Shown here: positions 9,889 through 52,900 of the stretch, piece by piece
Layout of the letters: the number at the start of each line of letters is the position of its first letter
Numbering within the stretch: the stretch's first letter is position 1
Origin: Chrysemys picta bellii
Lineage: Eukaryota
NCBI RefSeq assembly: GCF_011386835.1
Contig: NC_088798.1
Location: 108,934,001 to 108,998,000, forward strand
Direction: 5' to 3'
DNA length: 64,000 bases
The notes under the pieces: model-generated
What the model was told of the DNA's origin: nothing
The model's input: only the letters and a program-made list of their open reading frames with translations
Database searches by the model: none
Position numbers and translations under genes: made by a program

Positions 9889-12432
9889 TCAGCATTCTCC
9901 AAGTCGCGCAAAGCAAAGACTTCCAAGGTTTTCACTAGGGGGAAAGTCAGAGACACAGAATTCAGGGCTGCAACCCTTACGGGCAATGAGGGTAACCTTC
10001 TGTCAAGGCCCCATTATGTCACATTAACCAGAGCTTATTCGCTGACAGGAAAAATTGGACTGAGGAAGTTGACCCAGCATCTAGGAGGTAAAACAAATGG
10101 GCACAGGCAGGGGCTTGAATCACACCACAGTTATGTTTTGGTTTTTATGAATGGGCTATTTATTGCTGTAGAATCCTAGAATCACAGGACTGGAAGGGAC
10201 CTCGAGAGGTCATCTAGTCCGGTCCCCTGCCCTCATGATCTAGACTAGTGGTGAGCAACATGCGGCCCATCAGGGTAATCTGATTGCAGGCCGCGAGACA
10301 TTGTGCTGATGTTGACCGTCTGTAGGCACAGCCCCCCATAGCTCCCAGTTGGTGTGGTTCGCCGATCCCGGCCAATGCGGGAAGTGGCGGGCTGCAGGGA
10401 TGTGCTGTCTGCCGCTTCCCGCAGCTCCCATTGGCCAGGATTGGCAAACAGCAGCCACTGGGAGCTGTGGGGGGCAGGGACAATGCCTTGCCCACTACTG
10501 ATTTAGACCATCCCTGACAGGTGTTTGTCTAACCTGCTCTTAAAAATCCCCAATGATGGAGATCCCACAACCTCCCTGGGCAATTTATTTGAGTGCTTAA
10601 TTACTGCCCTTGCTGCAATTTAAGCCCATCGCTTCTTGTCCTATCCTCAGAGGTTAATTAAAACAACTTTTCTCCCTCATGCTTGTAACAACCTTTTATG
10701 TACCTGAAAACTGTTATCATGACCCCTCTCAGTTGTCTCTTTTCCAGACTAAACAAACCCAATTTTTTCCATTTTCCCTCAGAGATCTTGTTTTCTAGAC
10801 CTTTAATCATTTTTGTTGCTCTTCTCCAGTTTCTCCAGTTTTTCCCTGAAAAGTGGCATCCAGAACTGGACACAATAATCCAGTTGAGGCCGTAGCAGCG
10901 CAGAGTAGAGCAGAAGAATGACTTCTCGTGTTTTGCTTACAACAGTCCTGCTAACACATCCCAGAATGATGTCCGCTTTTTTTGCAACAGCGTTACACTG
11001 CTGACTCATATTTAGCTTGTGATCCACTCTGACCCCAGATCCCTTTCCGCAGTGCTCCTTCCTAGGCAGTCATTGCCCATTGTGTATGTGTGCAACTGAT
11101 TGTGCCTTCCTAAGTGGAGGACTTTGCATTTGTCCTTATTGAATTTCATCCTATTTACTTACAAGACTGCGCCACAAAAGGCACATTTGTTGCCGTATGT
11201 CTTGCCATCAGTGCCACAGACGGGGCGGTAGTCCAAGGTGCAGGCAGTTGGAGGACTCTTGTACTCACTGCAGAACCCCTACAAGTGAAATTCGTATCAG
11301 TGTTATTGTCTGTATTGCAGTAGAACCCTGACATTCCCATGGTGCTGGGCGTGCTGTGAACACAGAGGAAGGGACAGTCACCCCCCTCCCACCCTCAGGC
11401 TCACACTATCTTATCCTGTCCCTTGTCTCTTTCGACTGTGGTTCTGAAGCACTCACTTCCCAATTCCCCTTTCACTGCCTGGAGGAGCTGAGCCCGTCTC
11501 CCTGGTCCACGAGACTCTTCCGAACCCGCATCACAAGGTGTCTGAGCAAAGGGGTGTCTGTGCAGGCAGCAGATCCTCAAATATGAAAAATTTCATGCTC
11601 TTGTCATACCGTCCCCTGCCCCTTCTGTCTCTGAGTTGCTTTTTGTGACTCCCCCAGGCCCATCACAGACGGTGTCCTGTCCAATAGCGTATGGAGTCCA
11701 TCACTCGGACCACATGGCGTCTCAGCCCCAGGGATTCGCTCTCCCCTCACTAGGGCCTGGGGGAAGAGTCTGCTCCCACATTGACTCATGAGTTCCAGCG
11801 TGTTTCTAACCCAGAGCTCCTGGCCGCCATGATGCTACATACCAGGGATCGGGGCAAGTGACAATTGATTCACAGTGAGACTTAGACTCACCTGACCACC
11901 ATCGCCGACAGCATCTGGAAGAAAACACAGACACAAACAATACAACTAAGGGAAATGTCAGAGGGAAATCAGTTAACAACATTCATCTTTGCCTAGGACA
12001 ATGCATGCTGCTTCCTAACCAGCAACTGGGTCATGGAAAGGTTTCCTGCTCCCTCATCGAATTGTTGTGACAAATAGAAACATTGAGTGTAATGCACCGA
12101 CAGTCTGACCTGAAATACCATCACCAGGACCCACAATTAACGGCAGGCGCGATTGTTTGGAGTTCCCAGAGTGGAGTTTGGTTAAAAGCCCATAATGGCC
12201 CCTCAGTAACATCTTTCCAAAGGAAATGGCTGTTTCTGCCATGAGCCACTTCCCCGCTTATGACACCCAAACGCCCACAGCTGGAGCTCGGCTGGTCTTT
12301 AACAGTCGAGCCCCGGCTGAAGGTTAGAGGGTCAGACACAGCGCTCTGTACAGGCTGCAGCAAAAGTTACTCACCCTGAAAGCTGGAGAAGAGCCCCAGA
12401 GCGAGGAACACAACGACAGCTGCTGTCTTCAT
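9889..12432 (-). CDS. Kazal-type serine protease inhibitor A2 (SPINK6-like), 80 aa, P1=Leu
   Basis: Exons 12375-12432, 11892-11914, 11163-11278 and 9889-9934, all GT-AG, phases 1/0/2 as in SPINK genes. Protein [80 protein letters not shown]. Kazal motif, TATA box and AATAAA are present. Confidence 0.93.
10170..11155 (-). mobile_element. 5'-truncated CR1 in A2 intron 3, with a nested MITE-like segment at about 10247-10497
   Basis: [15 protein letters not shown] translation and CR1 3' end at 10170-10245; absent from the homologous introns of other paralogs. Confidence 0.85.
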
Positions 12433-12520
12433 GGTGGACGTGGGTCGTGGGTCTGCTGGAGTCTGTTAGTGCTGAGTTCTGCAGATGCTCTCCCAATGCA
12501 GCCCAAGGGAGGAGACCTCA

Positions 12521-12528
12521 TATATATA
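12521..12528 (-). promoter_or_regulatory. TATA box of A2
   Basis: TATATATA at the same spacing as in A1 and A5. Confidence 0.75.
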
Positions 12529-12927
12529 GACAAGAGGTTGGGCTCTCCAACTGGATTATGAAATCCCTGTCGAAATGGTCACTGAGGCTACAAACCAGTA
12601 CAGTGAATCGTCATTCCCTCGTAAGTCATAAGTTGGACAAGAATGCGTCTGTATCAAATGCCCTTTGGGGACTGCAATAAATATTAGTGGGGAAGGTTAA
12701 ACTGCCCTGACATAACGGGTGAGTTCAAAGTCAGCCTTTGTAAATCGTGTCGCACCTGCAGAGGAAGGCAGGTTATTTACATTCAATCAGGTGTGTCCGG
12801 GGTTCTGTTGGTTGCTGAGAACTGCCACCTTGTCATAGAATCATAGAATCATAGAATATCAGAGTTGGAAGGGACCTCAAGAGGTCATCTAGTCCAACCC
12901 CCTGCTCAAAGCAGGACCAATTCCCAG

Positions 12928-15777
12928 CTAAATCATCCCAGCCAGGGCTTTGTCAAGCCAGGCCTTAAAAACCTCCAAGGAAGGAGACTCCACCACCTCC
13001 CTAGGTAACGCATTCCAGTGTTTCACCACCCTCCTAGTGAAATAGTTTTTCCTGATATCCAACCTGGACCTCCCCCACTGCAACTTGAGACCATTGCTCC
13101 TTGTTCTGTCATCTGCCACCACTGAGAACAGCCAAGCTCCATCCTCTTTGGAACCCCCCTTCAGGTAGTTGAAGGCTGCTATCAAATCCCCCCTCATTCT
13201 TCTCTTCTGGAGACTAAACAATCCCAGTTCCCTCAGCCTCTCCTCATAAGTCATGTGCTCCAGACCCCTAATCATTTTTGTTGCCCTCCGCTGGACTCTT
13301 TCCAATTTTTCCACATCCTTCTTGTAGTGTGGGGCTCAAAACTGGACACAGTATTCCAGATGAGGCCTCACCAATGTCGAATAAAGGGGAACGATCACGT
13401 CCCTCGATCTGCTGGCAATGCCCCTACTTATACAGCCCAAAATGCCGTTAGCCTTCTTGGCAACAAGAGCACACTGTTGACTCATATCCAGCTTCTCGTC
13501 CACTGTGACCCCTAGGTCCTTTTCTGCAGAACTGCTACCTAGCCATTCGGTCCCTAGTCTGTAGCAGTGCATGGGATTCTTCCGTCCTAAGTGCAGGACT
13601 CTGCACTTGTCCTTGTTGAACCTCATCAGGTTTTTTTCTGCCCAATCTTCTAATTTGTCTAGGTCCCTCTGTATCCGATCCCTACCCTCTAGTGTATCTA
13701 CCACGCCTCCTAGTTTAGTGTCATCTGCAAACTTGCTGAGAGTGCAGTCCACACCATCCTCCAGATCATTAATAAAGATATTAAACAAAACCGGCCCCAG
13801 GACCGACCCTTGGGGCACTCCACTTGAAACCGGCTGCCAACTAGACATGGAGCCATTGATCACTACCCGTTGAGCCCGACGATCTAGCCAGCTTTCTATC
13901 CACCTTACAGTCCATTCATCCAGCCCATACTTCTTTAACTTGGCGGCAAGAATACTGTGGGAGACCGTATCAAAAGCTTTGCTAAAGTCAAGGAATAACA
14001 CATCCACTGCTTTCCCCTCATCCACAGAGCCAGTTATCTCATCATAGAAGGCAATTAGGTTAGTCAGGCACGACTTCCCCTTCGTGAATCCATGCTGACT
14101 GTTCCTGATCACTTTCCTCTCCTCTAAATGTTTCATAATTGATTCCTTGAGGACCTGCTCCATGATTTTTCCAGGGACTGAGGTGAGGCTGACTGGCCTG
14201 TAGTTCCCCGGATCCTCCTTCTTCCCTTTTTTAAAGATGGGCACTACATTAGCCTTTTTCCAGTCATCTGGAACCTCCCCCGATCGCCATGAGTTTTCAA
14301 AAATAATGGCTAATGGCTCTGCAATCGCATCTGCCAACTCCTTTAGCACCCTCGGATGCAGCGCATCCGGCCCCATGGACTTGTGTACGTCCAGTTTTTC
14401 TAAATAGTCTCGAACCACTTCTTTCTCCACAGAGGGCTGGTCAGCTTCTCCCCATGCTGTACTGCCCAGTGCAGCAATCTGGGAGCTGACCTTGTGCGTG
14501 AAGACAGAGGCAAAAAAATCATTGAGTACATTAGCTTTTTCCACATCCTCGGTCACTAGGTTGCCTCCCCCATTCAGTAAGGGGCCCACACTTTCCTTGA
14601 TTTTCTTCTTGTTGCTAACATACCTGAAGAAACCCTTCTTGTTACTCTTAACATCTCTTGCTAGCTGCAACTCCAAGTGTGATTTGGCCTTCCTGATTTC
14701 ACTCCTGCACGCCTGAGCAATATTTTTATACTCCTCCCTGGTCATTTGTCCAATCTTCCACTTCTTGTAAGCTTCTTTTTTGCGTTTAAGATCAGCAAGG
14801 ATTTCATTGTTTAGCCAAGCTGGTCGCCTGCCATATTTACTATTCTTTCTACACATCGAGATGGTTTGTTCCTGCAACCTCAATAAGGATTCTTTAAAAT
14901 ACAGCCAGCTCTCCTGGACCCCTTTGCCCTTCATGTTATTCTCCCAGGGGATCCTGCCCATCTGTTCCCTGAGGGAGTCAAAGTCTGCTCTTCTGAAGTC
15001 CAGGGTCCGTATTCTGCTGCTCTCCTTTCTTCCTTGTGTCAGGATCCTGAACTCGACCATCTCATGGTCACTGCCTCCCAGGTTCCCATCCACTTTTGCT
15101 TCCCCTACTAGTTCTTCTCTGTTTGTGAGTAGCAGGTCAAGAAAAGCTTTGCCCCTAGTTGGTTCCTCCAGCACTTGCACCAGGAAATTGTCCCCTACAC
15201 TATCCAAGAATTTCCTGGATTGCCTGTGCACCGCTGTATTGCTCTCCCAGCAGATATCAGGGTGATTAAAGTCTCCCATGAGAACCAGGGCCTGCGATCT
15301 AGCAACTTCTGCTAGTTGCCAGAAGAAAGCCTCGTCCACCTCATCCCCCTGGTCTGGTGGTCTATAGCAGACTCCAACCACGACATCACCCTTGTTGCTC
15401 CCACTTCTCAACTTTATCCAGAGACTCTCAGGTTTTTCTGCAGTTTCATACCGGAGCTCTGAGCAGTCATACTCCTCTCTTACATACAACGCAACTCCCC
15501 CACCTTTTCTGCCCTGCCTGTCCTTCCTGAACAGTTTATATCCATCCATGACAGTACTCCAGTCATGTGAGTTATCCCACCAAGTCTCTGTTATTCCAAT
15601 CACATCATAGTTCCCTGACTGTGCCAGGACTTCCAGTTCTCCCTGCTTGTTTCCCAGGCTTCTTGCATTTGTGTATAGGCACTTAAGATAACTCATCGAT
15701 CGTCCCTCTTTCTCAGCATGAGACAGGAGTCCTCCCCTCTTGCGCTCTCCTGCTTGTGCTTCCTCCCACGATCCCAT
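12928..15777 (-). pseudogene. CR1 ORF2p (APE endonuclease plus RT), 949 codons with one internal TGA at 13336-13338
   Basis: ORFs 13336-15777 and 12928-13314 are in the same frame. CVQF*APHY here corresponds to CVQFWAPHY in the 8.5 kb copy. Confidence 0.93.
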
Positions 15778-15821
15778 TTCCCCACTTACCTCAGGGCTTT
15801 GGTCTCCTTCCCCCGGTGAAC

Positions 15822-16829
15822 CTAGTTTAAAGCCCTCCTCACTAGGTTAGCCAGCCTGCTGGCGAAGATGCTCTTCCCTCTCTTCGTTAGGTGGAGCCCG
15901 TCTCTGCCTAGCACTCCTTCTTCTTGGAACACCATCCCATGGTCGAAGAATCCAAAGCCTTCTCTCCGACACCACCTGCGTAGCCATTCGTTGACTTCCA
16001 CGATTCGACGGTCTCTACCCCGGCCTTTTCCTTGCACAGGGAGGATGGACGAGAACACCACTTGCGCCTCAAACTCCTTTATCCTTCTTCCCAGAGCCAC
16101 GTAGTCTGCAGTGATCCGCTCAAGGTCATTCTTGGCAGTATCATTGGTGCCCACGTGGAGAAGCAGGAAGGGGTAGCGATCCGAGGGCTTGATGAGTCTC
16201 GGCAGTCTCTCCGTCACATCGTGTATCCTAGCTCCTGGCAAGCAGCAGACCTCTCGGTTTTCCCGGTCGGGGCGGCAGATAGATGACTCAGTCCCCCTGA
16301 GGAGGGAGTCCCCGACCACCACCACCCTCCTCCTCCTCTTGGGAGTGGTGGTCGTGGAACCCTCATCCCTAGGACAGTGCATCTTTTGCCTTCCAATCGG
16401 TGGAGTCTCCTTCTGCTCCCTTCCCTCAGATGGGTCATCTAGTCCACTCTCCGCATTAGTACCTGTAGAGAGAACATGGAAACGATTGCTCACCTGTATC
16501 TCCATTGCTGGTGCATGGATGCTCCTCTTTCTCCTTCTGGAGGTCACATGCTGCCAAACCTCCTCACAATCCTTCTGTCCCTGCTGCGCCTGCTCTGAAT
16601 CTTCAGAACATTGCGGCCGTAGAAGCATCTCCTGACGTCTGTCCAGGAAATCTTCATTTTCCCTTATGCAGCTCAGAGTCGATACTCGTTTCTCCAGCCC
16701 TCGAACCTTCTCCTCCAATATGGAGACCAGCTTGCACTTTGTACAGACAAAGTCGCTTCTGTCCTGTGGAAGAAAGACAAACATGGCACAACCTGTGCAG
16801 GTTACAACAGCTGATCGCTCACCTTCCAT
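15822..16829 (-). CDS. CR1 ORF1p (CxxC zinc-finger-like, coiled coil, SGNH esterase), 335 aa
   Basis: CTGC...CTKC, GDS and HVGTND motifs in an uninterrupted frame. Confidence 0.92.
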
Positions 16830-17110
16830 ATCACCATCCTCTTAAGAGCTTCCTCAACTGTTGCAGGAACTACTCAGAGAAACCTGCAGATTAAAGCCTC
16901 AGTGCGCTCTCCCCAAGCGAGCTCCCAGGCAAACTCCCGCTGTTAGCCTCTGCTGTTCGCCGCTCAGCTGGTTCGCTGCTGACTGCCCTTATATACCAGT
17001 CAGGCCCACTCAAGGCCCACCAACACAGCCCCCCTAATGCAGCACTTAGCGTACCTCCTCTTGGACAGCTCCCAGGCAAACTCCCGCTGTTAGCCTCTGC
17101 TGTTCGCCAC

Positions 17111-18030
17111 GTCCCAGTCACATTCATCTTTGCTGTCCTGCACCAGAAACCGGCATATTCCAGGGTCCGTGCGCCGTGTCCCTCAAGCCCCTGCCAATCT
17201 CTTTGTAAAAGCAGCTTGGAAATTCGATCTGGGCCAGGAGGGAGGGGAAGCGGCCATGTGGCACCAGTGTGCAGCCAGTAGCCCCGTGTCCATATGTTAA
17301 TGGGGACAGGGCGAGCTCCCTCAGGCAGCCCCGAACTACGGCAGCGGATAGGTCTGGGGGGATCCAGAGGAGTGGGACGAGCAGAGGCTGTGCTACATGG
17401 GGCAGGAAGGCAGCACAGATCCCATGCGGAGGGACCCCTGCACCCCTTGTGCACCAGGGAGATGATGGCTGGGGTCAGGGTACAGGTCTCTGCCGCGGAG
17501 ATCGGGAGGGATGTGGGGTCGCTGTGGGCTATGGCACAGTGGGGCTGTACATGGCCCCAGTGCTGCTGGGGGGAAGTGGTGGGATGTTCCCTTCTCCGCT
17601 CCCAAACGCAGGAGCAGCTGGGCACTGGGTAACTGTCTGGGGGCGCCGGGCTCTGCTTCTGGGCTGGGGATTCCTCCTCCCCTCTGCCCCAGGCAAAGCC
17701 CTTGAACTCTGGCTTCGCTCTTGGCTCCAGGACTTGCACCACTGAAAATACGGGGATGAGCCTGTTGACTTGTCACCGGCCCTGTGTCAGCCCAGGTCAG
17801 CGCCTGGCCGGGTCAAAGCCCCATAGTCCCTCCAGCACAGGGCCTGTGGTCGGGGGAGAAGGGTCGCCTACAGCCCCTTTCATCTCTGTACAGCAAGACT
17901 GGGAGTTGCTGAATGCTGCAATAATCAGCAAGAAACACCCCGGGCAAATGTAGGTGAGTGCTGCTTAGCATTATCATTATTAAGTATAGTAATATCGGGA
18001 GGAGGGGTCTCAGAGTCTGAGAGGAGATGG
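17111..18030. repeat. Segmental-duplication copy of the type A upstream flank
   Basis: Closely similar to 47826-48602 and 34228-34977 by visual alignment. Confidence 0.85.
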
Positions 18031-18425: not shown

Positions 18426-18999
18426 TCAGCATTCTCCGCCATGCTCAAAGCCAAGATTCCCGCCCCTCGCCCTACCAGGAAAGGCAGAGGTACAGAACTG
18501 ACTCAGCGCTAGATTCTTCGAGGGCAAAGAGGTCAAAACATCTGCTAAGGTCCCCATTACAGGGATGAATTAACGCTGCGCTCTTGGGCCTACCTGTGAG
18601 AAGTGAGAGTCAGACAGTTGCTACGTGGGCTACAGACTGGTCAGGAACATTTTGACGAAATGGCTTTCAATAAGGAAATGTATACATGACATTTCTTTTT
18701 GGAAAAAGAAATGGAAAAAGCGCTATCAACGCTGTCAAAATGATGAGTTCCGATTTTTCATTTAGAAATGACTTTCCATTTCGAAACTTCCTTTATTTCA
18801 TTACCACATATTTTAAAACAGTTTTTTTAAAAGGTCAAAATCAAAATGAAACATTTTGAAATTATAGAAAAAAACAAATTGTTCCTTGGGTCTAAATACC
18901 GGTGAGAATGGCCATGAACCCGAGTTCCTGCACAACTTTCTCTGTTTTTTGTGTTGATTGATGGGCTGTTTATTCCTGTACTGACACGACTGCTTTACA
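18426..18999 (-). pseudogene. Truncated relic of a divergent Kazal/SPINK gene (last 14 nt of exon 3 plus exon 4)
   Basis: 18986-18999 reads TGT AAA GCA GTC GT followed by GTCAGT. 18426-18471 follows a TAG acceptor. Spliced, this gives CKAVVARGGNLGFEHGGEC*. The flanking intron and 3' sequence are homologous to the array genes; upstream exons are absent. Confidence 0.75.
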
Positions 19000-24700: not shown

Positions 24701-26968
24701 GCAGGGCCCTGATTCCCCCACACTCCGTGACAGGAGGTGTCTCCTCTACAGGACCTCACCCTCGCCTTTGGGGCAGATGGGGAGTTTCCTACTTTTCCAG
24801 GAACTTCTGAGAAGATCTCAGTGCTATTTGTTTTAACCCTTCTCCTTCTGGATGAAGGGTAACGTATCTATCCACTCAATTCAGTGAAAGGCTTCAGAAA
24901 ATATTCATGCTGTCAACAAGACTTAATCATAAAAATGCAAAGAAATGTCTTTCTTTCTTTCTTTGGAGTTTCAGGGGGAACAGTTCACCCATGTAGTGGG
25001 ATCGTGGTTGTCTTAAGCCACCTATAATAAAACAATGCCCACATGATGGTCTCAACTTTTAGCTTCTGAAACACAGGCCTCTGCCATTTGAGCTGAAGAA
25101 ATAGCTGTTAGTCGCCACCTCCATAATACCCTGATGTTCTTTCAAAACTACACCCAGCCAACAGAGGCCAAAAAATGTCCATTGACATCAGTGGTAGCAG
25201 GATTAGACCCCAAACTATCCACAACAAAAGTGGTTAATGGCTTTGCTTTAAAACGCCTTTTATGGAGTTCTGCATTTCAGAGGCATTTCATACCACAGCC
25301 ACTTTTCTGTCATTCAGTTTTCCTATGCTGCTCTGGTGCTGGCCTCTGACATTGGACTCCAGTTTGTCTTTGTTGTTTCTTGATCTCTCTGTAAGTGTGA
25401 GGGGTTTCCTGGTTCTGCTTCTTGGTCCTGCTCATTAGGGGCTCTGATGGGAAACTTGTGATCTGGGTCTTCAGGAGTTAATTTTCAAAAAGCCAACCTA
25501 GAGCAACAGGGATTGAATTGTGCCTCGCTGCCTTCGGGAGCAGCCTGCTTTGTCTCTCTCTGTGTTTTGGGCTCTTGTACAATAAGGTTCTGGATTCTGA
25601 GAAATCATGTCGTATTATATTGCAAGGATACAGAAAGAGAGTTTTACATTTTACTCTAACATCCATTTGGATGGTATGAACATAACACTGCACACTCCGC
25701 CAGGTACCCCACAACAGGCTGTCTGGTCCATTCATTGACACTGCCTGAAAAATACCAGAACACTAAAGGTTGTGTCTCAGCAGCTGTTTTGCAGGATCCA
25801 GGATCTCACGGGCAGCCAATAAAACCTCAGCAGCTTTTGACTCTCTCTCTCTCTCTCTCTCCATTATTTGAGTGTCTCTTCCGAGTTAAGCCATAGCACA
25901 GAATTACATCAGCAATTACTCAATTCTAATGAGATGTTTCATTCGGAACAGGTCTGACTGTTTGTTAATGAACCTGTATCCAATTGACTAAGATATCAGC
26001 CCCACCAGTGAAGATTATCTGTATTAAGGAGCTATGGATAATGGGATCATTCAGCATTACAAGGTAGGGATTTAACCAAAAAAAGCAAGTGTTTGGAGAG
26101 GATCTAAATCTTCCAATTTCTCCTTTGGCAATGCCATAGAGCTTGTCATGCTAATAAAGTATCGTTGACTTGAATTAATTCAGGGCATGAAGCAACTCCT
26201 AAGTAATACAAGGTAAGAAGAAATTTTTGCTGTGGGAAGCTTCTCTCAGAACTGCCGAGGGCCTTGTACATGGCTCTAAATACACTGGCATAGGCTAGTG
26301 TTGGAAACAGAGATTGGGTAGCTGGGTGCCTGGTCTGATCCCGGGTGGGAATTTTTGACTCCTGATGGTAAGGTAACTGGATAAAAAGTGTGAAAAATCC
26401 GGACGGGAATGGGGGCTAATAGGCACCTATATAAGAAAAAGCCCCGAATATTGGGATTGTCCCTATAAAATCAGTACATTTGGTCACTGATGGCCTCTTT
26501 GTGGAGTTTCATAATAAACAATGACAGGAATTAAAAGTATTTAAACAACTAGATCAAGAATTTTACTGCCAACCACCTCAACCTCAACAAAATAATCAGA
26601 AAACAATGAGAACCGTAGACGAGAAGAAATTCAAAAAGAAAGGGGATTCCATGGATGTTTGGTTTCTAGGGGTGAATCTTTAGAGCTGCCTCAGTTTCTG
26701 GCAGAGTCAGTGATATCCCAGCTCAGAGAGAACCCCGGGAACAGCCCTTCCGAGCTCTGGGATCCGTGCAGGGAGGTTAGAGCTCCTGGAATCAGCCACT
26801 GTGGGGATGTGTGAATCCCTGTATAGATCAGAGTGAGGCTGGCCCCGACCTTTCAGGGGGCAGAGGTATCAGAGCAGGGCTCAGCACAGGTTACAGCAAA
26901 AGTGACTCACCTGAGTAGAAGCAGCAAAGTGCCAGAGCGAAGAGCAGAACGGCCCCTGTTATCTTCAT
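21702..26968 (-). CDS. Kazal-type serine protease inhibitor B3, 92 aa, P1=Glu, C-terminal KDDL
   Basis: Exons 26911-26968, 24168-24190, 22024-22139 and 21702-21783. Protein [92 protein letters not shown]. Confidence 0.93.
22428..23517. mobile_element. LTR-like insertion in B3 intron 2
   Basis: About 1.1 kb, ends TGTCACA, shared with B4 (39248-40334) and absent from the type A genes and B6. Confidence 0.6.
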
Positions 26969-38520: not shown

Positions 38521-41500
38521 CTAAAGGTCTTCTCTTTCCTTGGCCTCGTCTTGCGACTTGCATTCTCCATAATGCGCAAAGCAAAGACTTCCAAGGTATT
38601 CACTGGAGGGAAAGACAGAGACACAGAACTCAGGGCTGCAATCCTTATGGACAGTGAGAGCAAAGCATTTGTCAAGGCCCCAGTATGTGACATTAACCAG
38701 AGCTTATTGGCTGACAGGAAAAATTACACTGAGATAGTCGACCCAGCCTCTAGGAGGTAAAGACACAGACGCAGGCAGGGCCTTGAATTACCTCACAATT
38801 GTATTTTAGTTTTTGTTAATGGGCCGTTTATTCTGATACTTACTAGACTGATGAACAAAAGTCACATTTGTTGCCATATGTCTGGCCATCAGTGCCACAG
38901 ATAGGGTTGTATTCCCTGGTGCAGCCTTTCGGAGGCTCCTTGTACTCACTGCAGAAACCCTACAAAGAACATTAGTGTTGCTATTAGAGTTATTGTCTGC
39001 ATTTCAGTGGTGCCCCAACGCCCCACTTGCCTCTGAACAGAGAGGGAGGGACACTCCCTGCCCCTGGGAGCTCGCAGTACCTACTCCTGTCCCTTGTCTC
39101 CACTGACGTTCTGATGAACCGACTCCCCAATTCCCCTCTCTCTGTCAGGAGGAGCCGAGCCTGTCTCCCTGGTGTAAGAGATGTTTCTGAACCCACAGCA
39201 CATGGTGTGTGAGCGAAGGGGCATCTCCGTAGGCATCAGATGCTAATCTGACATTACCCAGGGTACAAGCTGGACTGATGAACAGCTGTGGGCCCTTTTA
39301 CACTGCTTTGCTAGGAAAGCAACCACTCCTGTTCCTGCTCACCCACAGCCTCCAGCATGTAAATTACTCTGAGCTGTACGGCATGAGTGCTTTGGCCGGC
39401 CACTCTTGAATTACACTGCAGGGAAACACCAGCAAACTTCCAGTCCCAGACTCTCTCCCAGAAATGTGTGTCTTGTAGTGCCCAGCACCCTCCTGGACAA
39501 TACAAGCTCATATAAAGTCTGTCATTTTATTAATAGAAAATGAAATGCACAAATCCTGTTGTCTCAAATGGAGTTTTCCAAACACTTCAATCCAAACACA
39601 CTGCTTTAGATAAAACAATAAAACAAGTTTCTTATCTACAGAAAGATAGATTTTAAGTGATTACAAGTAACGAGGCATCAAAGTCAGAATTGGGTACAAG
39701 AAAATAAAAGCAAAACACCACTAATGCTTGACTTATCAAGCTAAGTGAATTCAAAGCAAAAGGTCTCTTTCACCAAATGCTTCAGCAGTCTTACTGGGTG
39801 TCCTTTCCACCAGGACCCCTCCCCCAGTCCCATGTTACTTTCCTTGTCCTTCAGGTGTTGGTTTTGTCGTGGGCAGAGAGAAAGGGAGGAGTAACTTGGG
39901 GCGTTTGTTCCCCATTCTTATATTTCCCCCTCTTCTTTGAGCATCATCTCCAGCTGGGATTCATGCGACAGAAAGTTTGTGGGGATGGGAACCTCCAGCT
40001 GTTCCTTTGCCAACAAGTAACTTTCTTGCTCACAACTTTTTACCTGCCAAAGAATGGCCACATAACCACATGATGGTCCATTTGATTATGTTGAGACCGG
40101 GCTGAGGCATCAGTTTGTCTTTTGTCTCTCATTTATGGCTGTTCTCCCAGACTGGGTACATGTCTTATAGAGTAGAATCTTATAACTTTACATACAATGT
40201 TGCCTCACATACTTAACAGGACAATAATGTTCAGCACATTATGAGTTTTCAAATGATACCTCACAAGGCATTCTTTGTACAAAATTTATCATAGTCTTGT
40301 AAAAGGGATGAATATAGGGGTACATACTGTCATACCCGGTCTAAGAGATGCTTCTGAACCCGCATCGTATAGAGTGTGAGTGAAAGAGCATCTCCACAGG
40401 CAGCAGATGTTCAAATATAAAAACCCTCATGGGGGAGGGTCCCAGAGCCCGAACATCTACACAGCCATTTTTAGCCTGCAGCCCACGCCCCCCAAGCTCA
40501 AGTCAGCTGATCCGGTCCAGCCCTGGACGGGCCCTGGGTCTTTGTTCCAGTGTAGACGTACCCATGGGTTCTCAGCCCCAGAAATTCACTCTCCGCTGGC
40601 TAGGGCACTGGGTACAGTCTACTTCTGCTCTGAGTCATGTGCTTTCATAGGTTTCTAACCAGAAATCTCTAAAACCAGAGATTGGGGAAAGTGACTATTA
40701 ATGAACAGGGAGAGTTCGACTTACCTTACCAGCCTGGCCAGCAGCATCTGGAACAAAACAGAATGAGATTGTTTCAGATTCTCTCTCCCATCCTCGTGCT
40801 GGGGTTATTGATGTCCCTAGTTCTGACCAAGTCTTTCTCTTTACTTTTATACAGAGCCTTTTCAAATGTTCTGGTACGGGGTTGTGCCACTAGGGATGTC
40901 AACTCTTGTACCACCTGTATTCACTGAATTGAGATCACAAAGGAGGAACGGGCAAACATTCTTGGTGCTTTCCATAGTGATCCTATTCTAGGCAGGTGTC
41001 TCCTCTACAGGACCTCACCCTCGCCTTTGGGGGAGGTGGGGAGTTTCCTACTTTTCCAGGAACTTCTGAGAAGATCTCAGTGCTATTTGTTTTAACCCTT
41101 CTCCTTCTGGATGAAGGGTAACATTGTATCTACTCATTAAATTCAGTGAAAGGGTTCAGAAAACATTCATGTTGTCAGCAAGACAATCATAAAAATGCAA
41201 AGAAATGTCTTTTTTCTTTCTTTAGAGTTTCATGGTCGATCAGTTCAACCATATAGCGGGATCATGGCTGTGTTAAGCCACCCATAATAAAACAACATCC
41301 ACAGGTTGATCACATCTTTAGCTTTTGAAACACAGGCCCCTGCCATTTGAGCTGAAGAAATCGCTCTGTTAGCTGCCATAATACTCTGATGTTCTTTCAA
41401 AACTACACCCAGCCAACAGAGGCCAAAAAATGTCCATTGACACCAGTGGTAGCAGGATTAGACCCCAAACTATCCACAACAAAAGTGGTTAATGGCTTTG

Positions 41501-43309
41501 CTTTAAAACGCCTGTTATGGAGTACTGCATTTCAGAGGCATTTCATACCACAGCCACTTTTCTGTCATTCGGTTCACCTGTTCTCAACAGGCTGTCTGGT
41601 CCATTCATTGACACTGTCTGGTGCTGGCCTCTGACATTGGACTTCACTTCAGGTATCTTTGTTGTTCCCTGATCTCTCTGTAAGTGTGAGGGGTTTCCTG
41701 GTTTTGCTTCTTGAGCCTGCTCATTAGAGGCTCTGTTGGGAAACTTGTGATCTGGGTATTCAGGAGTTAATTTTCAAAAAGCCAACCTAGAGCACTAGGG
41801 ATTGAATTGTGCCTCGCTGCCTTCGGGAGCAGCCTGCTTTGTCTCTCTCTGTGTTTTGGGTTCTTGTACATTAAGGTTCTGGATTCTGAGAAATCATGTC
41901 GTATTATATTACAAGGATACAGAAAGAGAGTTTTACATTTTACTCTAACATCCATTTGGATGGTATGAACATAACACTGCACACTCCGCCAGGTACCCCA
42001 CAACAGGCTGTCTGGTCCATTCATTGCCTCTGTCTGAAAAATACCAGAACACTAAAGGTTGTGTCTCAGCAGCTGTTTTGCAGGATCCAGGATCTCACGG
42101 GCAGCCAATAAAACCTCAGCAGCTTTTGACTCTCTCTCTCTCTCTCCATTATTTGAGTGTCTCTTCCGAGTCAAGCCATAGCACAGAATTACATCAGCAA
42201 TTACTCAATTCTAATGCGATGTTTCATTCGGAACAGGTCTGACTGTTTGTTAATGAACTTAACAATCCAATTGACTAAGATATCAGTCCCCCAAGTGAAG
42301 ATTATCTGTATTAAGGAGCTCTGGATAACGGGATCATTCAGCATTACAAGGTAGGGATTTAACCAAAAAAAGCAAGTGTTTGGAGAGGATCTAAATCTTC
42401 TAATTTCTACTTTGGCAATGCCATAGAGCTTGTCATGCTAATAAAGTATCGTTGACTTGAATTAATTCAGGGCATGAAGCAACTCCTAAGTAATACAAGG
42501 TAAGAAGAAATTTTTGCTGTGGGAAGCTTCTCTCAGAACTGCCGAGGGCCTTGTACATCGCTCTAAATACACTGGCATAGGCTAGTGTTGGAAACAGAGA
42601 TTGGGTAGCTGGGTGCCTGGTCTGATCCCGAGTGGGAATTTTTGATTCTTGATGCTAAGGTGACTAGATAAAAAGTGTGAAAAATCCGGACGGGAATGGG
42701 GGCTAATAGGCACCTATATAAGAAAAAGCCCCGAATATTGGGATTGTCCCTATAAAATCAGTACATTTGGTCACCGTACCTGATGGCCTCTTTGTGGAGT
42801 TTCATAATAAACAATGACAGGAATTAAAATTATTTAAACAACTGGATCAAGAATTTTACTGCCAACCACCTCAACCTCAACAAAATAATCAGAAAACAAC
42901 CAGAACGGTAAATGAGAAGAAATTCAGAAAGAAAGGGGATTCCATGGATGTTTGGTTTCTAGGAGCTGTGAATCAGTTTCTGGCAGAGTCAGTGATATCC
43001 CAGCCCAGAGAGAACCCCGGGAACAGCCCTTCCGAGCTCTGGGATCGGTGCAGGGAGGTTAGAGCTCCTACAATCAGCTCAATGTCCAGGCTGTGCAGTG
43101 GCATCTCAGAAATAAACCAGCTGCTCCTGGAATCAGCCACTGTGGGGATGTGCGAACCCCTGTATAGATCAGAGTGAGGCTGGCCCCGACCTTTCAGGGG
43201 GCAGAGGTATCAGAGCAGGGCTCAGCACAGGCTACAATAAAAGTGACTCACCCGAGTAGAAGCAGCAAAGTGCCAGAGCGAAGAGCAGAATGGCCCCTGT
43301 TATCTTCAT
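38521..43309 (-). CDS. Kazal-type serine protease inhibitor B4, 92 aa, P1=Arg, C-terminal REDL
   Basis: Exons 43252-43309, 40725-40747, 38844-38959 and 38521-38602. Protein [92 protein letters not shown]. Confidence 0.93.
39248..40334. mobile_element. LTR-like insertion in B4 intron 2
   Basis: Near-identical to 22428-23517. Confidence 0.6.
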
Positions 43310-45403: not shown

Positions 45404-47201
45404 TCAGCATTCTCCCAGTCGCGCAAAGCAAAGACTTCCAAGGTTTTCACTAGGGGGAAAGTCAGAGACACAGAACTCAGGACTGCAACCCTTACGGGCA
45501 ATGAGAGTAACCTTCTGTAAGGGCCCCAGTCAAATAACCAAATAACCAGAGCCCTTTTGCTGACAGGAAAAATTAGACTAAGTTTACCCAGCCTCCAGGA
45601 GGTAAAGACAGAGGGGCGCAGGCAAGGGCTTGAATTACATCATAATTCTGTTTTCATTTTTATGAATAACCTATTTATTCTGTAAAAAGTGACAGAGAGT
45701 CCTGTGGCACCTTATAGACTACAGACGTATTGGAGCATAAGCTTTCGTGGGGGAATACCCACTTCGTCATTCATGAGGTTGATGGATTTCCACTCCATAT
45801 GGCTAAATGCAGTGCCTTGCGTGGTGTCAAGTATCAGAGGGGTAGCCGTGTTAGTCTGGATCAATGTATTTATTCTGTTACTTACAAGACTTCTTTGCAA
45901 AAGAAGCATTTGTTGCTGTGTGATCTGCCATCAGTGCCACAAACAGGACTGTACTCCCGGGTGCAGGCAGATGGAGGCCTCTGGTACTCACTGCAGAAAC
46001 CCTACAATGGTGTTAATATCACTGTCAATGTTATTGCCTGTATTGCAGTAGTGCCCCGACGTTCCCCTGGTGCTGGGTGTGCTGTGAACACAGAGGAACG
46101 GACAGTCCCTGCCCTCAGAGCTCACAGTCTAATCCTGTCTCTCGTCTCCTTCGTGGTTCTGATGAACTGACTTCCCAATTCCCCTCTCGCTGCCAGGGGG
46201 AGCCGAGCCCGTCTCCCTGGTCCACAAGACTCTTCCGAACCCGCATCACAAGGTATCTGAGCAAAGGGGTGTCAATGCAGGCAGCTGATGCCCAAATATA
46301 AAGAACCTCATGTTCTTGTGATACTGTCCCCTCCCCCGTTCCATCTCTGAGCTGTTCCCAGTGCCTCCCCCAGGCCCATCACAGACCGTGTCCTGTCCAG
46401 TAGTGTATGAAGTCCGTCCCTCGGACCACATGGCGTCTCAGCCCCAGGGATTCGCTCTCCCCTCACTAGGGCCTGGGGGAGAGTCTGCTCCCACATTGAC
46501 TCATGAGTTCCAGCGTGTTTCTAACCCAGAGCTCCTGGCCGCCATGATGCTACATACCAGGGATCGGGGCAAGTGACAATTGATTGACAGTGAGACTTAG
46601 ACTCACCTGATGACCTTGGCCGACAGAGTCTGAAAGAAAACAGACACAAAGGACACAACTAAGGGAAATGTCAGAGGAAAATCAGCTAAAAACATTTAGC
46701 TCTGCCTATGACGACGGATGCAAATTGCTAACCAGCAACTGGGCCACGGGAAGGAGTCCTGCACTCTCATCCAGTTGCTGTGATAAATAGAAACATGGGG
46801 AGTAATGCACCCACAGTCTGACCTGAAAGCACAGAAGATTAGGGTTGGAAGAGACCTTTGGAGGTTATCTAGTCCAACCCCCGAATACTATCACTGGGCC
46901 TACAATTAACTGCAGGCGCGATTGTTTGGAGTTCCCAGAGTGGAGTTTGGTTAAAAGCCCATAATGGCCCCTCAGTAACATCTTTCCAAAGGAAATGGCT
47001 GTTTCTGCCATGAGCCACTTCCCCGCTTATGACACCCAAACGTCCATAACTGGTGCTCGGCTGGTCTTTAACAGTTGAGCCCCGGCTGAAGGTTAGAGGG
47101 TCAGACACAGCGCTCTGTACAGGCTGCAGCAAAAGTTACTCACCCTGAAAGCTGGGGACGAGCCCCAGAGCGAGGAACACAACGACAGCTGCTGTCTTCA
47201 T
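45404..47201 (-). CDS. Kazal-type serine protease inhibitor A5, 80 aa, P1=Arg
   Basis: Exons 47144-47201, 46607-46629, 45886-46001 and 45404-45449. Protein [80 protein letters not shown]. Confidence 0.92.
45684..45862 (-). mobile_element. Penelope fragment in A5 intron 3
   Basis: Homology to the Penelope terminus and ORF start (MEWKSINLM); TATTTATTCTGT is duplicated at 45672-45683 and 45867-45878. Confidence 0.85.
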
Positions 47202-47297: not shown

Positions 47298-49772
47298 GAC
47301 AAGAGGTTGGGCTCTCCAATTGGATTATGAAATCCCTCTTGAAATGGTCACTGAGGCTACAAACCAGTACAATGAATGGTCATTCCCTATTCCTAATTTA
47401 TCATGTCTGGTTGGTCATCTAAGTCAAATGGGCATTTGGTGCCCCCTGATTGGTTGGTTGAAACTTTTGCAAAAGGAGGATCGCGTGTGCCAACTAACAA
47501 ATAACAAATACTCTTGTTACGAACGACACTCGTCATTGTCACATGATCACAGGGGTTGGCATGAAGAACAGCAGTTCCCAAACCCTAATGTAAACAATCC
47601 CACATTACTGGATGCTCGTAAGTAGGGCAAGAATGTGGCTGTATCAAATGCCCTTTGGGAACTGCAATAAATATTAATGGGGAAGGTTAAACTGCCCTGA
47701 CATACACGGGTGAATTCAACGTCAGACTTTGTAAATCGTGTCGCACCTGCAGAGGAAGGCAGGTTATTTACATTCGATCAGGTGTGTCTGGGGCTCTGTT
47801 GGTTGCTGAGAACTGCCACCTTGCATCCCAGTCACATTCATCTTTGCTGTCCTGCACCAGAAACCGGCATATTCCAGGGTCCATGCCCCCTGTCCCTCAC
47901 ACACTGCCAGCCACTTTACCATTCAAGCCCCTGCCAGTCTGTTGGTAACAGCAGCTGGGAAATTCGATCTGGGCCAGGAGGGAGGGGAAGCGGCCATGTG
48001 GCACCAGTGTGCAGCCAGTAGCCCCGTGTCCATATGTTAATGGGGACAGGGCGAGCTCCCTCAGGCAGCCCCGAACTACGGCAGCGGATAGGTCTGGTGG
48101 GATCCAGGGGAGCGGGACGAGCAGAGGCTGTGCTGCATGGGGCAGGAAGGCAGCACAGATCCCATGCGGAGGGACCCCTTCGCCCCTTGTGCACCAGGGA
48201 GATCATGGCTGGGGTCAGGGTACAGGTCTCTGCCGCGGGGATCGGGAGGGACGTGGGGTCGCTGTGGGCTATGGCACAGTGGGGCTGTACATGGCCCCAG
48301 TGCTGCTGGGGGGAAGTGGTGGGATGTTCCCTTCTCCGCTCCCAAACACAGGAGCAGCTGTGCACTGGGTAACTGTCTGGGGGCGCCGGGCTCTGCTTCT
48401 GGGCTGGGGATTCCTCCTCCCCTCTGCCCCAGGCAAAGCCCTTGAACTCTGGCTTCGCTCTTGGCTCCAGGACTTGCACCATTGAAAATACGGGGATGAG
48501 CCTGCTGACTCGTCACTGGGCCCTGTGACAGCCCAGGTCAGTGCCTGGCTGGTTCAGAGCCCCATAGTCCCTCCAGCACAGGGCCTGTGGTCGGGGGAGA
48601 AGGTGCTGTGGATAGCTCGAGGCAGGGCCAGGGCTGGAGCACAGCGTAACCAATCCCAGGCTTCAAAATTCATGATTCCGGACACCACAATCCCAGGACT
48701 GGGATAAGGATAATAAACGGGTCGGGGGGATTTTGATTTGCCTGCTGGTGCTTGATCCCTTAGTTGTCACATTTCCCAGCTTGCCTCTGAAATCACAAGG
48801 GCAGAAACTCTCGTTTTTAAAGGAAAGCCGAGACGCCCCCATGTCTCCTGGGTCCAGGAGCTGGGGCTTTCAGAGCAGCAACCATGGTGAGACTCATCGG
48901 GGGAATCACGGGGCACGGCAGGTCCGCAGGCTGGGAGCGGCTGCAAGGGTGACGCCCATATAGCAGGCAGCCGAGGGCTGGGACTGGCGGGCCTGAGGGC
49001 CAGGCTGGGGAGCAGCCTGTGGCTGACAAAGGAGAGGGCCATGGGGAGGGGACCAAAGGCCGGGACCCCGGCTGGGGGACCTGCAAGCCCATGTGTGATG
49101 GTCTCTGGGATGGAGGGGGGTATTCCTGGCACCAGGCTGAGGAACCCCCCACATCCTGCTGTGTCAGTCGGCCCTGAGGAGCTGGGCTGGGAACTGTGGA
49201 GTTTAGCAGTGGTTTGTGGTAACTTTGAAGCCGTTGTACCCAGGGTACAAGGTTGGCAGGTTGTTGGTCTGCTGCACAGGGGCATGAGGGCAGCACGGAG
49301 CCTGGCCAGAGGGACTCCGCAGTCCCCTGTGCACCATGGAGGAGACGGACGGACTGTGCAGCTCATGGGTCTCTGGGGGGGCAGGGTTGGGAGGAAAGTG
49401 GGGCGGTTATTGGGGAAGGGGGCACCCCACAGCATGGATCGACATGGCCACACCCACACCGGGGCAAGGAGAAGGACAAGCCCTTTACACCCTGACAAGT
49501 AGCCCTGTGACCTGCGTTTGGGTTGTGGATCCTATATCCTCCCATCCCTTGCTGTTCTCCCAGGCAAAGACCTTTTACTGGGGCTTTGCTCATGGTATTG
49601 AGAACACTCAGGTCTGGAAGGGAGTCAGATACAGGGAACGTGTCTGGGGTTTGTGTTCTCATTAACTCCGGTCTGTAAGCTGGGGGGAGCCCGTGTGAGA
49701 CACGGGAGAGCAGAGTCCCTCCTTGGAAAGGGGAAAAAAAACCACAGAGGTAACGAATTCTGCTGAGTTTGC

Positions 49773-49778
49773 TTTATT
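49773..49778 (-). terminator. PolyA signal of B6
   Basis: AATAAA in the conserved context. Confidence 0.75.
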
Positions 49779-49926
49779 GGACATGCAGGGGGATAGTCAG
49801 CGACGCTGTCAGGAGCCCTGGAAATGGAGGATGAGAAGAGAACGTGGCTCCATGCGGAGATCTGCTGGTGGGAACTAGAAGCAAATGGGGTTCGGCTCCA
49901 TATCAGCGCTCGGCACCCCCAAGGAT

Positions 49927-52900
49927 TCAGCATTTTCCATGTCGCGCAAAGCAAAGACTTCCAAGCTTTTCACTAGGGGGAAAGAGAGACACAGAACTCA
50001 GGGCTGCAACCTTATGGACAACGCGGGTAAAGCTTCTGTCAAGGCCCCAGTGTGTCAAATAAGCAAAGCCCTTTTGCTGACATGAAAAATTAAACTGAGG
50101 AACTTGACCCGGCCTCTAGAAGATAAAGACAGATGGGTGAAGGCCGGGGCTCGAATTACATCACAGTTGTATTTTGTTTTTTATGAATGGGCCATTTATT
50201 CTGTTACTTACTAGACTGCTTTGCAGAAGTAGCATTTGTTGCTGTATGTTTTCCCATCAGTGCCACAAACAGGGTTGTACTCCTCAGTGCAGACAGATGG
50301 AGGCTTCTTGTACTCACTGCAGAAACCCTTCAAAGAACATTAGTATTGCAGTTAGTGTTATTGTCTGCATTTCAGTAGTGCCCCGACGCCACCTCCCCCC
50401 CGCCAGGCTGGGCATTCTCTGAACACAGAGGACCCTGGGAGCTCGCAGTACCTGCTCCTGTCCCTTGTCTCCACTGACGTTCTGATGAACCGACTCCCCA
50501 ATTCCCCTCTCGCTGCCAGGAGGAGCCGAGCCCGTCTCCCTGGTGTAAGAGACGTTTCTGAACCCACAGCACATGGTGCGTGAGCGAAGGGGCATCTCCA
50601 CAGGAAACTCTTTTGTTCCAGTGTAGACGTACCCATGGGTTCTCAGCCCCAGAGATTCACTCTCCCCTGGCTAGGGCACGAGGTAGAGTCTGCTCCTGCT
50701 TTGACTCATCAGTTCTAGCGTGTTTCTAACCCAGAGATCGTGGTCTCTGTGATGCTACAAAGCAGAGACTGGGGAAAGTGACTATTAATGAACAGGGAGA
50801 GTTTGGCTTACCTTACCAGCCTGGCCAGCAGCATCTGGAACAAAACACAGACAGAAACGATACAATGAAGGGAAATGCTGGAGTCAGTTAAGAACATTCA
50901 TCCCTGTGTAGGACAATGCATGCAGCTTCCTAACCAGCACAAGAAGTATTAGCAAGAAGTGTCATGCTTACAACAGTCCTGCTAACACACCCCAGAATGA
51001 TGTTCTCTTTTTTTGCAACAGCGTTACACTGCTGACTCATATTTAGCTTGTGATCCACTATGACCCCAGATCCCTTTCCGCAGTGCTCCTTCCTCGGCAG
51101 TCATTGCCCATTTTGTATGGGTGCAACTGATTGTTCCTTCCTAAGTGGAGTACTTTGCTTTTGTCCTTATTGAATTTCATCCTATTTACTTCATTCTCCA
51201 GTTTGTCTAGATCATTTTGAATTTTCATCCTAACCTCCAAAGCACTTGCAACCCCTCCCAGCTTGGTATCGTCCACAAACTTTATAAGTGTGCTCTCTGT
51301 GCCATTATTGAAATCATTGATGAAGATATTGAGCAGAACCAGACCCAGGACCAATCCCTGTGGGACCCCACTCGATATGCGCTTCTGGCTTTATTGTGAA
51401 CCACTGATAACTACTCTCTTAGAATGATTTTCCAACCAGTTATGAACCCACATTATAGTAGCTCCATCTAGGTTGCATTTCCCTAGTTTGTTAATGAGGT
51501 CATGCGAGACAGTATCAAAAGCCTCACTAACGTCAAGATATACCACGCCTACCGCTTCCCCCCATCCACAAGGCTTGTTACCCTGTCAAAGAAAGCTATC
51601 AGGTTGGTTTGACAAGATTTGTTCTTGACAAATCCATGCTGTCTGCTACTTATCACCTTATCATCTTCTAGGTGTTGGCAAATTGATTGCTTAATTATTT
51701 CCTTCATTATCTTTCCGGATACTGATGTTAAGCTGACTGGTCTGTAATTTCCCAGTTGTCTTAAGCAACCTATATTAAAACAACATCCACCTGTTGGTCT
51801 CATCTTTAGCTTTTGAAACGCAGGCCCCTGTCACTTCAGTCTAAGGACTAGCCCTGTTAGCTGCCAGCTCTAGTAATGCCCTGATGTTCTTTCAAAGCAA
51901 CATCGAGCCAACGGAGGCCAAAAAATGTCCATTGATATCAGTGGAAGCAGGATTAGACCCAAGCTATTCACAACAAAAATGGTTAATGGCTTTGCTTTAA
52001 AACGCCTGTTATGGAGTAGTGCATTTCAGCGGTATTTAATACCACAGCCACTATTCTGCCATTCATTTGTCCTGTGCTCCTCTGGCGCTGGCCTCTGACA
52101 TTGGACTCCACTTCAGGTGTCTTTGTTGTTCCCTGATCTCTCTTTAAGTTTGAAGGGTTTCCTGGCCCTGCTCATTAGTGGCTCTATTAGGAAACATGTG
52201 ATCTGGGTCTTCAGCAGTCACACTGCAAAGAGGCAGCCTAGCGCAACATGGGTTGCCCTGTGCCTCATTGCCTTTGGGAGCAGCCTGCTTTGTCACTCTC
52301 TGTTTTTTGGGTTCTTGTACATTTGGGTTCTGGATTCTAAGATATAAAGTCATATTATATCGCAAGCTTCCAGAAAGAGAAATTTACATTTTTATCGAAC
52401 ATCTGTTTGGATGCTGTGAACATAACACTGCACACTCCGCCATGTACCCCACAAAGGCTGTCTGGTTCATTCATTGACACTGTCTGAAAAATATCAAAAA
52501 AACTAAAGGTTGTGTCTCAGCAGCTGTTTTGCAGGATCCATGACCTCACCAAAAGCCGTAAAAACCTAGGCAGCTATCTCCTATCTCTCTCCTCTATTTG
52601 CGTGTGTCCTCAAAATTAAGTCATAGCAAAGAATTGCATCAGCAATTTCTCCAGTGTAATGAGATGTTTCATTCTGAACATCTGGCTCTGTCTTTTAACG
52701 AAACTGTATCCAGTTCACTAAGATATCATCCCCCCAAGTGAAGATTATCTGTATCAAGGAGCTCTGGATAACAAGGTCATCCAGCATTACAAAGTAGGGA
52801 TTAAAAAAAACGTATTTGGAAAGGATCTAAACCCTCCTGTTTTATACTTTGGCAATGCTGTACATGTTGTCATGCTAATTAAGTATCCTTGAATTGAATT

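Follow-up and report, generated by a model that had tools for sequence, protein, structure and literature searches.

The Kazal domain is, in textbook terms, a rigid six-cysteine scaffold, the evolution of which is thought to act in the reactive-site loop. Here we describe a 64,000-nucleotide stretch of the genome of the turtle Chrysemys picta bellii (contig NC_088798.1, positions 108,934,001 to 108,998,000 of the forward strand; the window in the following) that carries a tandem array of single-domain Kazal genes, all complete members of which encode a seventh cysteine. The closest known relatives are the ovomucoid third domains OMTKY3 (from turkey) and OMSVP3 (PDB entries 1PPF, 1CHO and 2OVO), which are classical Kazal domains, and the turtle genes keep their Asn33 and their reactive-site frame, C-T-x. 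OMTKY3, however, has six cysteines and a threonine at position 49, forms the third and final domain of its chain, and contains an N-glycosylation sequon at positions 45-47, whereas the turtle genes encode single domains with a cysteine at position 49 (Cys49) and L-G-S at 45-47.

By overall organization, the turtle proteins resemble the mammalian single-domain inhibitors SPINK6 (PDB entry 2N52), SPINK9 and SPINK12, that is, precursors of about 80 residues consisting of a signal peptide and one Kazal domain, but none of the listed relatives of this type has a cysteine at the Thr49 position. The bikazins, submandibular double-headed Kazal inhibitors, possess two reactive sites per molecule, as would a dimer linked through Cys49; in bikazins, however, the domains are peptide-joined within one gene product, whereas the link in the turtle proteins is a hypothetical, post-translational disulfide. 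A Kazal fold with eight cysteines and a fourth, within-chain disulfide is found in conkazal-M1 and the schistosomins (PMC13101452). These proteins and those of turtles both have more than six cysteines, but the former have an even number, eight, paired internally, and the latter an odd one. Outside the family, a secretory protein in which an unpaired cysteine is used for covalent assembly or retention is immunoglobulin M, through its tailpiece cysteine and ERp44; the likeness is confined to the conserved unpaired cysteine, and the protein families are unrelated. A literature search yields no description of the extra cysteine or of a disulfide-linked Kazal dimer, although older biochemistry in subscription journals may have escaped it. 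The protein sequences are already public as automatic predictions, and the extra cysteine itself is undescribed in the literature searched.

A seventh, partnerless cysteine in a tandem array of Kazal genes

The window, which contains no N, encodes six four-exon, single-domain Kazal genes arranged head-to-tail on the minus strand and labelled F, A, B, C, D and E by ascending coordinates; A-E are complete and F is partial (Table 1). The Kazal-core exons come from a six-frame scan, and exon 1 and the 23-nucleotide exon 2 of each gene from a motif search and similarity to paralogues. In the five complete genes, the last exon, located behind a canonical AG acceptor, reads E-[NYK]-L-G-S-L-C-F-x-x-x-G-[EK]-C, with the extra cysteine seven residues ahead of the last canonical one. 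The first-pass annotation, which addressed the span 9889-49972 (from the stop codon of gene A to the first base of the last exon of gene E), had noted a seventh cysteine in every intact gene, and this is indeed the case in all five.

Exon 3 supplies cysteines 1 to 5, the last exon supplies the sixth and the extra one, and exon 2 supplies none. The precursors contain seven cysteines in total in A and D, and nine in B, C and E, two of which are adjacent to each other in the hydrophobic core of the signal peptide. The number of cysteines is odd for any signal-peptidase cut, except for an improbable one between the adjacent pair of B, C and E; therefore, at least one cysteine is left without a partner inside the chain, in agreement with the annotation, which had called the extra cysteine unpaired. 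A fourth disulfide within the chain is excluded for the genes of the window because neither exon 2 nor the tails contain a cysteine. The C5-x17-C6 spacing is identical to that in OMTKY3, so that the extra cysteine occupies the Thr49 position of the latter, as had also been proposed.

Apart from this residue, the domains are classical Kazal domains, which upholds the original assignment. The exon 3 translations of all five genes, which end before the last cysteine, match the Pfam family Kazal_1 (PF00050) with 48.9-54.5 bits and E-values of 1e-13 to 1e-14 (cut-off 21), and the best solved relatives are ovomucoid third domains (E ~1e-13 for exon 3 of gene A). Exons 3 and 4 together yield the classical spacing C1-x9-C2-x7-C3-x10-C4-x2-C5-x17-C6 in all five genes, which is that of OMTKY3 except for two additional residues between C1 and C2. 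The seventh cysteine departs from the rule of three disulfides with no cysteine to spare; membership in the Kazal family stands nevertheless. These genes do not encode ovomucoids, which consist of three tandem Kazal domains: each has a single pair of Kazal exons and a signal-peptide exon of its own, and the database name “ovomucoid-like” is an automatic assignment. All splice sites are GT-AG, and the intron phases are 1, 0 and 2 in A-E. With the last canonical cysteine on the final exon, apart from cysteines 1 to 5, this four-exon plan and its phases are those that we take to be characteristic of SPINK1 (c.55/56, c.87/88, c.194/195). Thus, the window contains a tandem family of classical single-domain Kazal serine-protease-inhibitor genes that is expanded in turtles.

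The P1 residue, assigned by position as the second residue after the second cysteine, is Leu in A, Glu in B and E, and Arg in C and D; canonical inhibition via P1 is the predicted activity. The signal peptides fall into two types, one in A, D and F and the other in B, C and E. In A, D and E, the stop codon follows the domain immediately, whereas B and C encode an 11-residue tail, ending with KDDL in B and with REDL in C. Of gene F, exons 1 and 2 are inside the window, and exons 3 and 4 lie past its start; the exon 2 peptide matches the Chrysemys protein P0168, which bears the same extra cysteine.

Two junctions, 49972 to 50212 and 50327 to 50812, are present in RNA contigs from three probable RNA runs of two studies and connect exons 4, 3 and 2 of gene E exactly as modelled. 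The skipped segments have the ends CT..AC on the plus strand, equivalent to GT..AG on the minus strand. A contig of ~442-445 nucleotides covers the whole gene E message and agrees fully with the window over the coding parts of exons 3 and 4. An artefact of annotation or reading frame is excluded, given that the gene E junctions are present in these contigs. A preprint describes a protein named “ovomucoid-like isoform X1” that is raised in the heart of cold-acclimated hatchling painted turtles, the gene being unspecified.

The codon of the extra cysteine (TGC) is embedded in an exactly conserved 19-mer, CTTGGAAGTCTTTGCTTTG, which has exactly five matches in the window, all on the minus strand (at 9909, 21758, 38577, 45424 and 49947), compared with 0.01 expected by chance; the annotation had placed the codon within an invariant block, correctly so for the five complete genes. 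Each of the five 116-nucleotide Kazal-core exons from the six-frame scan is located on the same strand as one 19-mer and lies upstream of it by a few hundred to 1,300 bases. When the last-exon regions of the five genes are aligned over 566 columns, 58% of the columns are invariant, and no other invariant run is as long as the 19-mer; by simple arithmetic, at 58% per column, a run of 19 within 566 columns is expected in well under 1/100 trials. The end of the intron that precedes the last exon is also well conserved and includes invariant runs, so that data from other species were needed to judge a DNA-level cause. A relic last exon, for which no exon 3 was found in a search, has a glycine codon in place of the TGC of the intact copies, in accord with the original reading.

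The second-longest invariant run, of 16 nucleotides, holds AATAAA and is found ~186 nucleotides downstream of each 19-mer in the five genes (e.g., near 49760-49775 in gene E). Its position fits the 3' end of the gene E RNA contigs, and the block is likely to be the polyadenylation signal.

Position of the cysteine on the domain

The structure was modelled with AlphaFold from an alignment of 52 relatives, with P0190 as the query; this Emys protein is the orthologue of gene A and matches it at 36 of 38 residues of exon 3. The domain is predicted with local-distance-difference scores (pLDDT) above 90 and shows the Kazal fold, namely, a short three-stranded sheet and one helix (strands 47-49 and 74-77; helix 58-67). 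The best PDB matches are OMTKY3 complexes, with a root-mean-square deviation of 1.0 A over 51 residues at 57% identity. The extra cysteine (Cys 73 in P0190) is located at the entry of the last strand.

In OMTKY3 numbering, position 49 is flanked by the conserved core hydrophobic positions 48 and 50, and lies outside the consensus enzyme contacts, which we take to be P6-P3', P14', P15' and P18'. Because 48 and 50 belong to the core, 49 is variable and mostly polar in other Kazal domains, and 49 is not an enzyme-contact position, the thiol most likely projects from the C-terminal strand into the solvent, remote from the reactive loop.

Distribution among turtles and other animals

A profile search of a representative library at 50% identity, started with the five exon 3 peptides, returns almost exclusively multi-Kazal proteins among the best 150 matches. 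A useful exception is P0138, a UniRef “Ovomucoid” from Chrysemys picta bellii, which is a misfusion of exons of genes E and D of the window. Three further UniRef entries from the same organism (P0151, P0152 and P0153), like P0138, are spurious two-domain “ovomucoids” created by fusing exons of neighboring genes (E with D, B with A); gene B differs from model P0153 by one residue.

Two more homologue searches brought the set to about 130 relatives, the C-terminal halves of which were scanned for a cysteine seven residues ahead of the last canonical one (position -7). Among the turtle domains, this cysteine is present in 39 of 52 instances, from 15 genera, throughout in the context L-G-S-L-C-F or a near variant. 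The carriers include the cryptodires Chrysemys, Trachemys, Terrapene, Emys, Mauremys, Pangshura, Chelonoidis, Gopherus, Chelonia, Eretmochelys, Chelydra, Pelodiscus and Carettochelys, and the pleurodires Pelusios and Emydura. One Chelydra member is named “Kazal type 6” by NCBI; the “SPINK6” and “ovomucoid-like” labels are automatic predictions. Most turtle instances that lack the cysteine can be put down to fused models or to true ovomucoid domains; P0161 (Asn), P0162 (Arg) and P0208, which is discussed below, genuinely lack it at this position. In the Dermochelys protein P0199, the last exon is translated in the +1 frame (L-E-V-F-A-L), suggesting either a frameshift in the gene or an incorrect model.

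In the non-turtle set (birds, squamates, mammals, frogs and fish), none of the 65 domains has a genuine cysteine at -7, the sole count being a parsing artefact (P0156). This position accommodates at least 13 kinds of residues, led by Arg, Gly and Ser. A search with the C-terminal 40 residues of P0190 detects 16 candidates, 15 from turtles and one from a moth, and no carrier of the motif outside turtles, which does not prove its absence there. The annotation had asked whether this cysteine is common in SPINK6-like proteins; in the 65 domains from outside turtles, it is not. Thus, the extra cysteine is turtle-specific among the animals sampled. The original observation is confirmed, and its interpretation is supported in part: the cysteine is real, but it is not special to the locus, given that it occurs in predicted proteins of at least 15 turtle genera, and conservation covers the whole L-G-S-L-C-F motif. 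Crocodilian and tuatara sequences are absent from all the homologue lists obtained; therefore, the origin of the cysteine can be dated only to before the common ancestor of living turtles.

Age and selection

A tree of 60 domains, built from 51 columns, leaves most forks unresolved and supports two clades, the A-type (support 90/96) and the F-type (98/92, starred), each of which includes the pleurodire Emydura together with cryptodires; monophyly of the seven-cysteine group is neither shown nor rejected. The tail-bearing type is present in Emydura as well (P0200). Given that the A-type, F-type and tail-bearing type are all represented in Emydura and in cryptodires, at least three cysteine-bearing paralogues predate the split between the turtle suborders. 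The divergence of Cryptodira and Pleurodira is well over 100 million years old. By this distribution, the seventh cysteine predates living turtles. KDEL-like tails are also widespread in turtles (REDL, RDDL, KDDL, RNEL, KEDL and VEEL), Emydura included, so that the tail is old too.

Genomic DNA of Emydura, Pelodiscus, Carettochelys and Chelonia was compared over 10 last exons. Within the conserved block, there are five synonymous changes (GGA to GGC, GGA to GGG, CTT to CTC twice, and TTT to TTC), as against a single non-synonymous one (Ser to Asn), and the cysteine codon is TGC in all 10 exons as well as in the five copies of the window. The excess of synonymous over amino-acid changes implies that selection acts on the peptide and not on the DNA alone, and long-term purifying selection on the seventh cysteine is supported. 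Across 31 unique turtle segments, positions 45-50 (OMTKY3 numbering) are at least 97% conserved; 46 non-turtle segments have 9-12 kinds of residues at 45, 46, 47 and 49, and 3-6 hydrophobic kinds at 48 and 50.

Intron 3 of gene B shares 94.6% of its nucleotides with that of the sister gene C, compared with only 82.8% for exon 3 (22024-22139 vs 38844-38959), which points to accelerated change of the exon that encodes the reactive site. From these comparisons, the cysteine has been kept by selection, while the reactive-site residues have changed freely.

The few genes with a different number or arrangement of cysteines are informative. The Pelodiscus protein P0208 (L006:13700), nested within the A-type clade, has, according to the genomic DNA, Phe at -7 and a replacement of Tyr by Cys at -3; thus, a cysteine lost at one position and gained at the other retains the odd cysteine on the same strand. 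Two of the three tail-bearing Pelodiscus genes (L004:591 and L004:12892) encode an eighth cysteine three residues past the last canonical one (Q-P-C or E-P-C), and one Emydura gene (L001:4013) encodes an eighth cysteine in the exon 3 hairpin, where D-G is replaced by D-C. Such variants suggest a seventh cysteine that is reachable and can be supplied with a partner, although they amount to a few cases and no proof.

Possible roles of the unpaired cysteine

Tentatively, as the likeliest role but somewhat short of a probable one, we propose that the cysteine forms an intermolecular disulfide, either in a homodimer or heterodimer of paralogues or as a tether to another secreted protein. Under this scenario, Cys49 would link two identical chains, chains of co-expressed paralogues, or one chain and another secreted protein in a mixed disulfide; a bond at this position would leave the reactive loops free, and the conserved residues around the cysteine would provide the contact surface. 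A more specific version, in which paralogues with differing P1 residues (Leu, Arg, Glu) would be linked through Cys49 as heterodimers, giving combinatorial double-headed inhibitors with an L-G-S-L-C-F interface that would predate the split between the turtle suborders, is quite doubtful.

Several observations weigh against an intermolecular disulfide. RNA contigs are seen for gene E, while the exons of gene D are uncovered (these two genes make up the locus that was examined for transcripts). The exposure of the thiol is read from the substitution pattern. In the Pelodiscus and Emydura copies with eight cysteines, the eighth could pair with the seventh inside the chain. P0161 and P0162, which are trionychian members of the family, have no extra cysteine at all, so that it is dispensable in some copies. 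Finally, a free surface thiol on a small secreted protein is commonly just capped by cysteine or glutathione.

An alternative that is unlikely but merits consideration is that the thiol stays unpaired or capped and serves as a redox or quality-control handle, either for retention or retrieval in the early secretory pathway, above all of the B and C products, or extracellularly, in a sacrificial or regulatory capacity. The odd cysteine count is compatible with such a role, exposed thiols are a signal for ERp44-type retention, and the KDDL and REDL termini of B and C have counterparts across turtles (REDL, RDDL, KDDL, RNEL, KEDL). Conservation of the cysteine is, however, just as strong in the lineages without a tail (A, D, E and F), and both tails miss the PROSITE pattern [KRHQSA]-[DENQ]-E-L because they contain Asp, instead of the required Glu, at -2. 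Retrieval variants ending with DL are functional in some proteins.

It is similarly unlikely that the cysteine is a partly buried, inert structural residue of a turtle-specific C-terminal strand that engages in no intermolecular chemistry. Conservation extends beyond the cysteine to the entire hexapeptide, the neighboring Leu48 and Phe50 occupy core positions, and cysteine itself is fairly hydrophobic, all of which would fit such a residue. Against this possibility, the 46-65 non-turtle domains compared have Arg, Gly, Ser, Asp, Asn, Thr, Lys or His at this position, which is a surface-like repertoire; the modelled backbone fits OMTKY3 at 1.0 A with no evident repacking; and the swap in P0208, where the cysteine at -7 is lost and one at -3 gained, suggests that the cysteine itself is wanted.

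The least credible explanation, that the cysteine is a passenger of DNA-level invariance caused by gene conversion among the copies or by a splicing signal in the short last exon, draws on the identity of all six third-codon positions of the block in the five copies of the window, on the invariant runs at the end of the preceding intron and on the mosaic-like appearance of gene E between the two subfamilies, but it is largely refuted by the cross-species data, in which the block is preserved at the amino-acid level across 15 genera and no fewer than three old paralogue lineages, and synonymous changes (GGC, GGG, CTC twice, TTC) accompany only one amino-acid change, and by the relic copy, which lost the cysteine after constraint ended.

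Other features of the array

The exons of the array and the relic are listed in Table 1. Compared over 49674-53441, gene E is mosaic-like: its exons 1 and 2 are identical or nearly so to those of B and C, and its tail-less last-exon region is 89% identical to those of A and D vs 78-82% to those of B and C. This pattern suggests unequal crossing-over or gene conversion inside the array. The DNA that encodes the acidic tails of B and C (21702-21740 and 38521-38559) aligns with the 3' untranslated region of A, D and E. Exon 3 of gene D encodes Ser-His in place of the Thr-Tyr (Tyr31 of OMTKY3) shared by all the paralogues and almost all Kazal domains; gene D, the reading frame of which is intact, may be losing its function. 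Intron 3 of this gene contains a short repeat (45696-45862) with a summed contig depth of up to ~37,000, many unlike flanks and representation in all four RNA-type runs, which is probably an abundant expressed interspersed repeat outside the gene D message.

The relic last exon adjoins a long interspersed nuclear element (LINE), which is located between gene A and the relic, at 13336-17742 on the minus strand, and contains an 813-amino-acid frame with endonuclease and reverse-transcriptase domains. Upstream of this frame, there is a 335-amino-acid frame with a GDSL esterase-like domain, an organization of the CR1 type. More reverse-transcriptase or endonuclease fragments are found at 8555-9487 and 4964-5677.

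Table 1. Exons of the Kazal gene array and the relic last exon, in window coordinates
Feature	Position	Strand	Basis
Gene A last exon (coding part and stop); seventh-Cys codon TGC 9913-9915	9889-9934	-	19-mer and exon model
Gene A exon 3, Kazal core, Cys 1-5, P1 Leu	11163-11278	-	Pfam match
Gene A exon 2, 23 nucleotides, no Cys	11892-11914	-	
Gene A exon 1 coding part, signal peptide, no Cys	12375-12432	-	
Gene B last exon, tail ending KDDL; seventh-Cys codon 21762-21764	21702-21783	-	
Gene B exon 3, Kazal core, P1 Glu	22024-22139	-	
Gene B exon 2	24168-24190	-	
Gene B exon 1 coding part, signal peptide with Cys-Cys	26911-26968	-	
Gene C last exon, tail ending REDL; seventh-Cys codon 38581-38583	38521-38602	-	
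Gene C exon 3, Kazal core, P1 Arg	38844-38959	-	
Gene C exon 2	40725-40747	-	
Gene C exon 1 coding part	43252-43309	-	
Gene D last exon; seventh-Cys codon 45428-45430	45404-45449	-	
Gene D exon 3, Kazal core, P1 Arg, Ser-His for Thr-Tyr	45886-46001	-	
Gene D exon 2	46607-46629	-	
Gene D exon 1 coding part	47144-47201	-	
Gene E last exon; seventh-Cys codon 49951-49953; RNA contigs extend to ~49761-49767 (3' untranslated region)	49927-49972	-	
Gene E exon 3, Kazal core, P1 Glu, both junctions in RNA contigs	50212-50327	-	
Gene E exon 2	50812-50834	-	
Gene E exon 1 coding part	53352-53409	-	
Relic last exon; GGC (Gly) 18450-18452 for the Cys codon	~18426-18472	-	
Gene F exon 1 (1135-1192) and exon 2 (538-560)	538-1192	-	

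Implications

In turtles, a whole vertebrate order, this Kazal family combines a partnerless cysteine with a conserved patch on the side of the domain opposite the reactive-site loop. If the cysteine does form intermolecular disulfides, it would represent a new route to multi-headed or tethered inhibitors from single-domain genes and would offer a simple handle on their physiological partners. If the thiol is merely capped or buried, it would still be a clean lineage marker of the turtle SPINK expansion.

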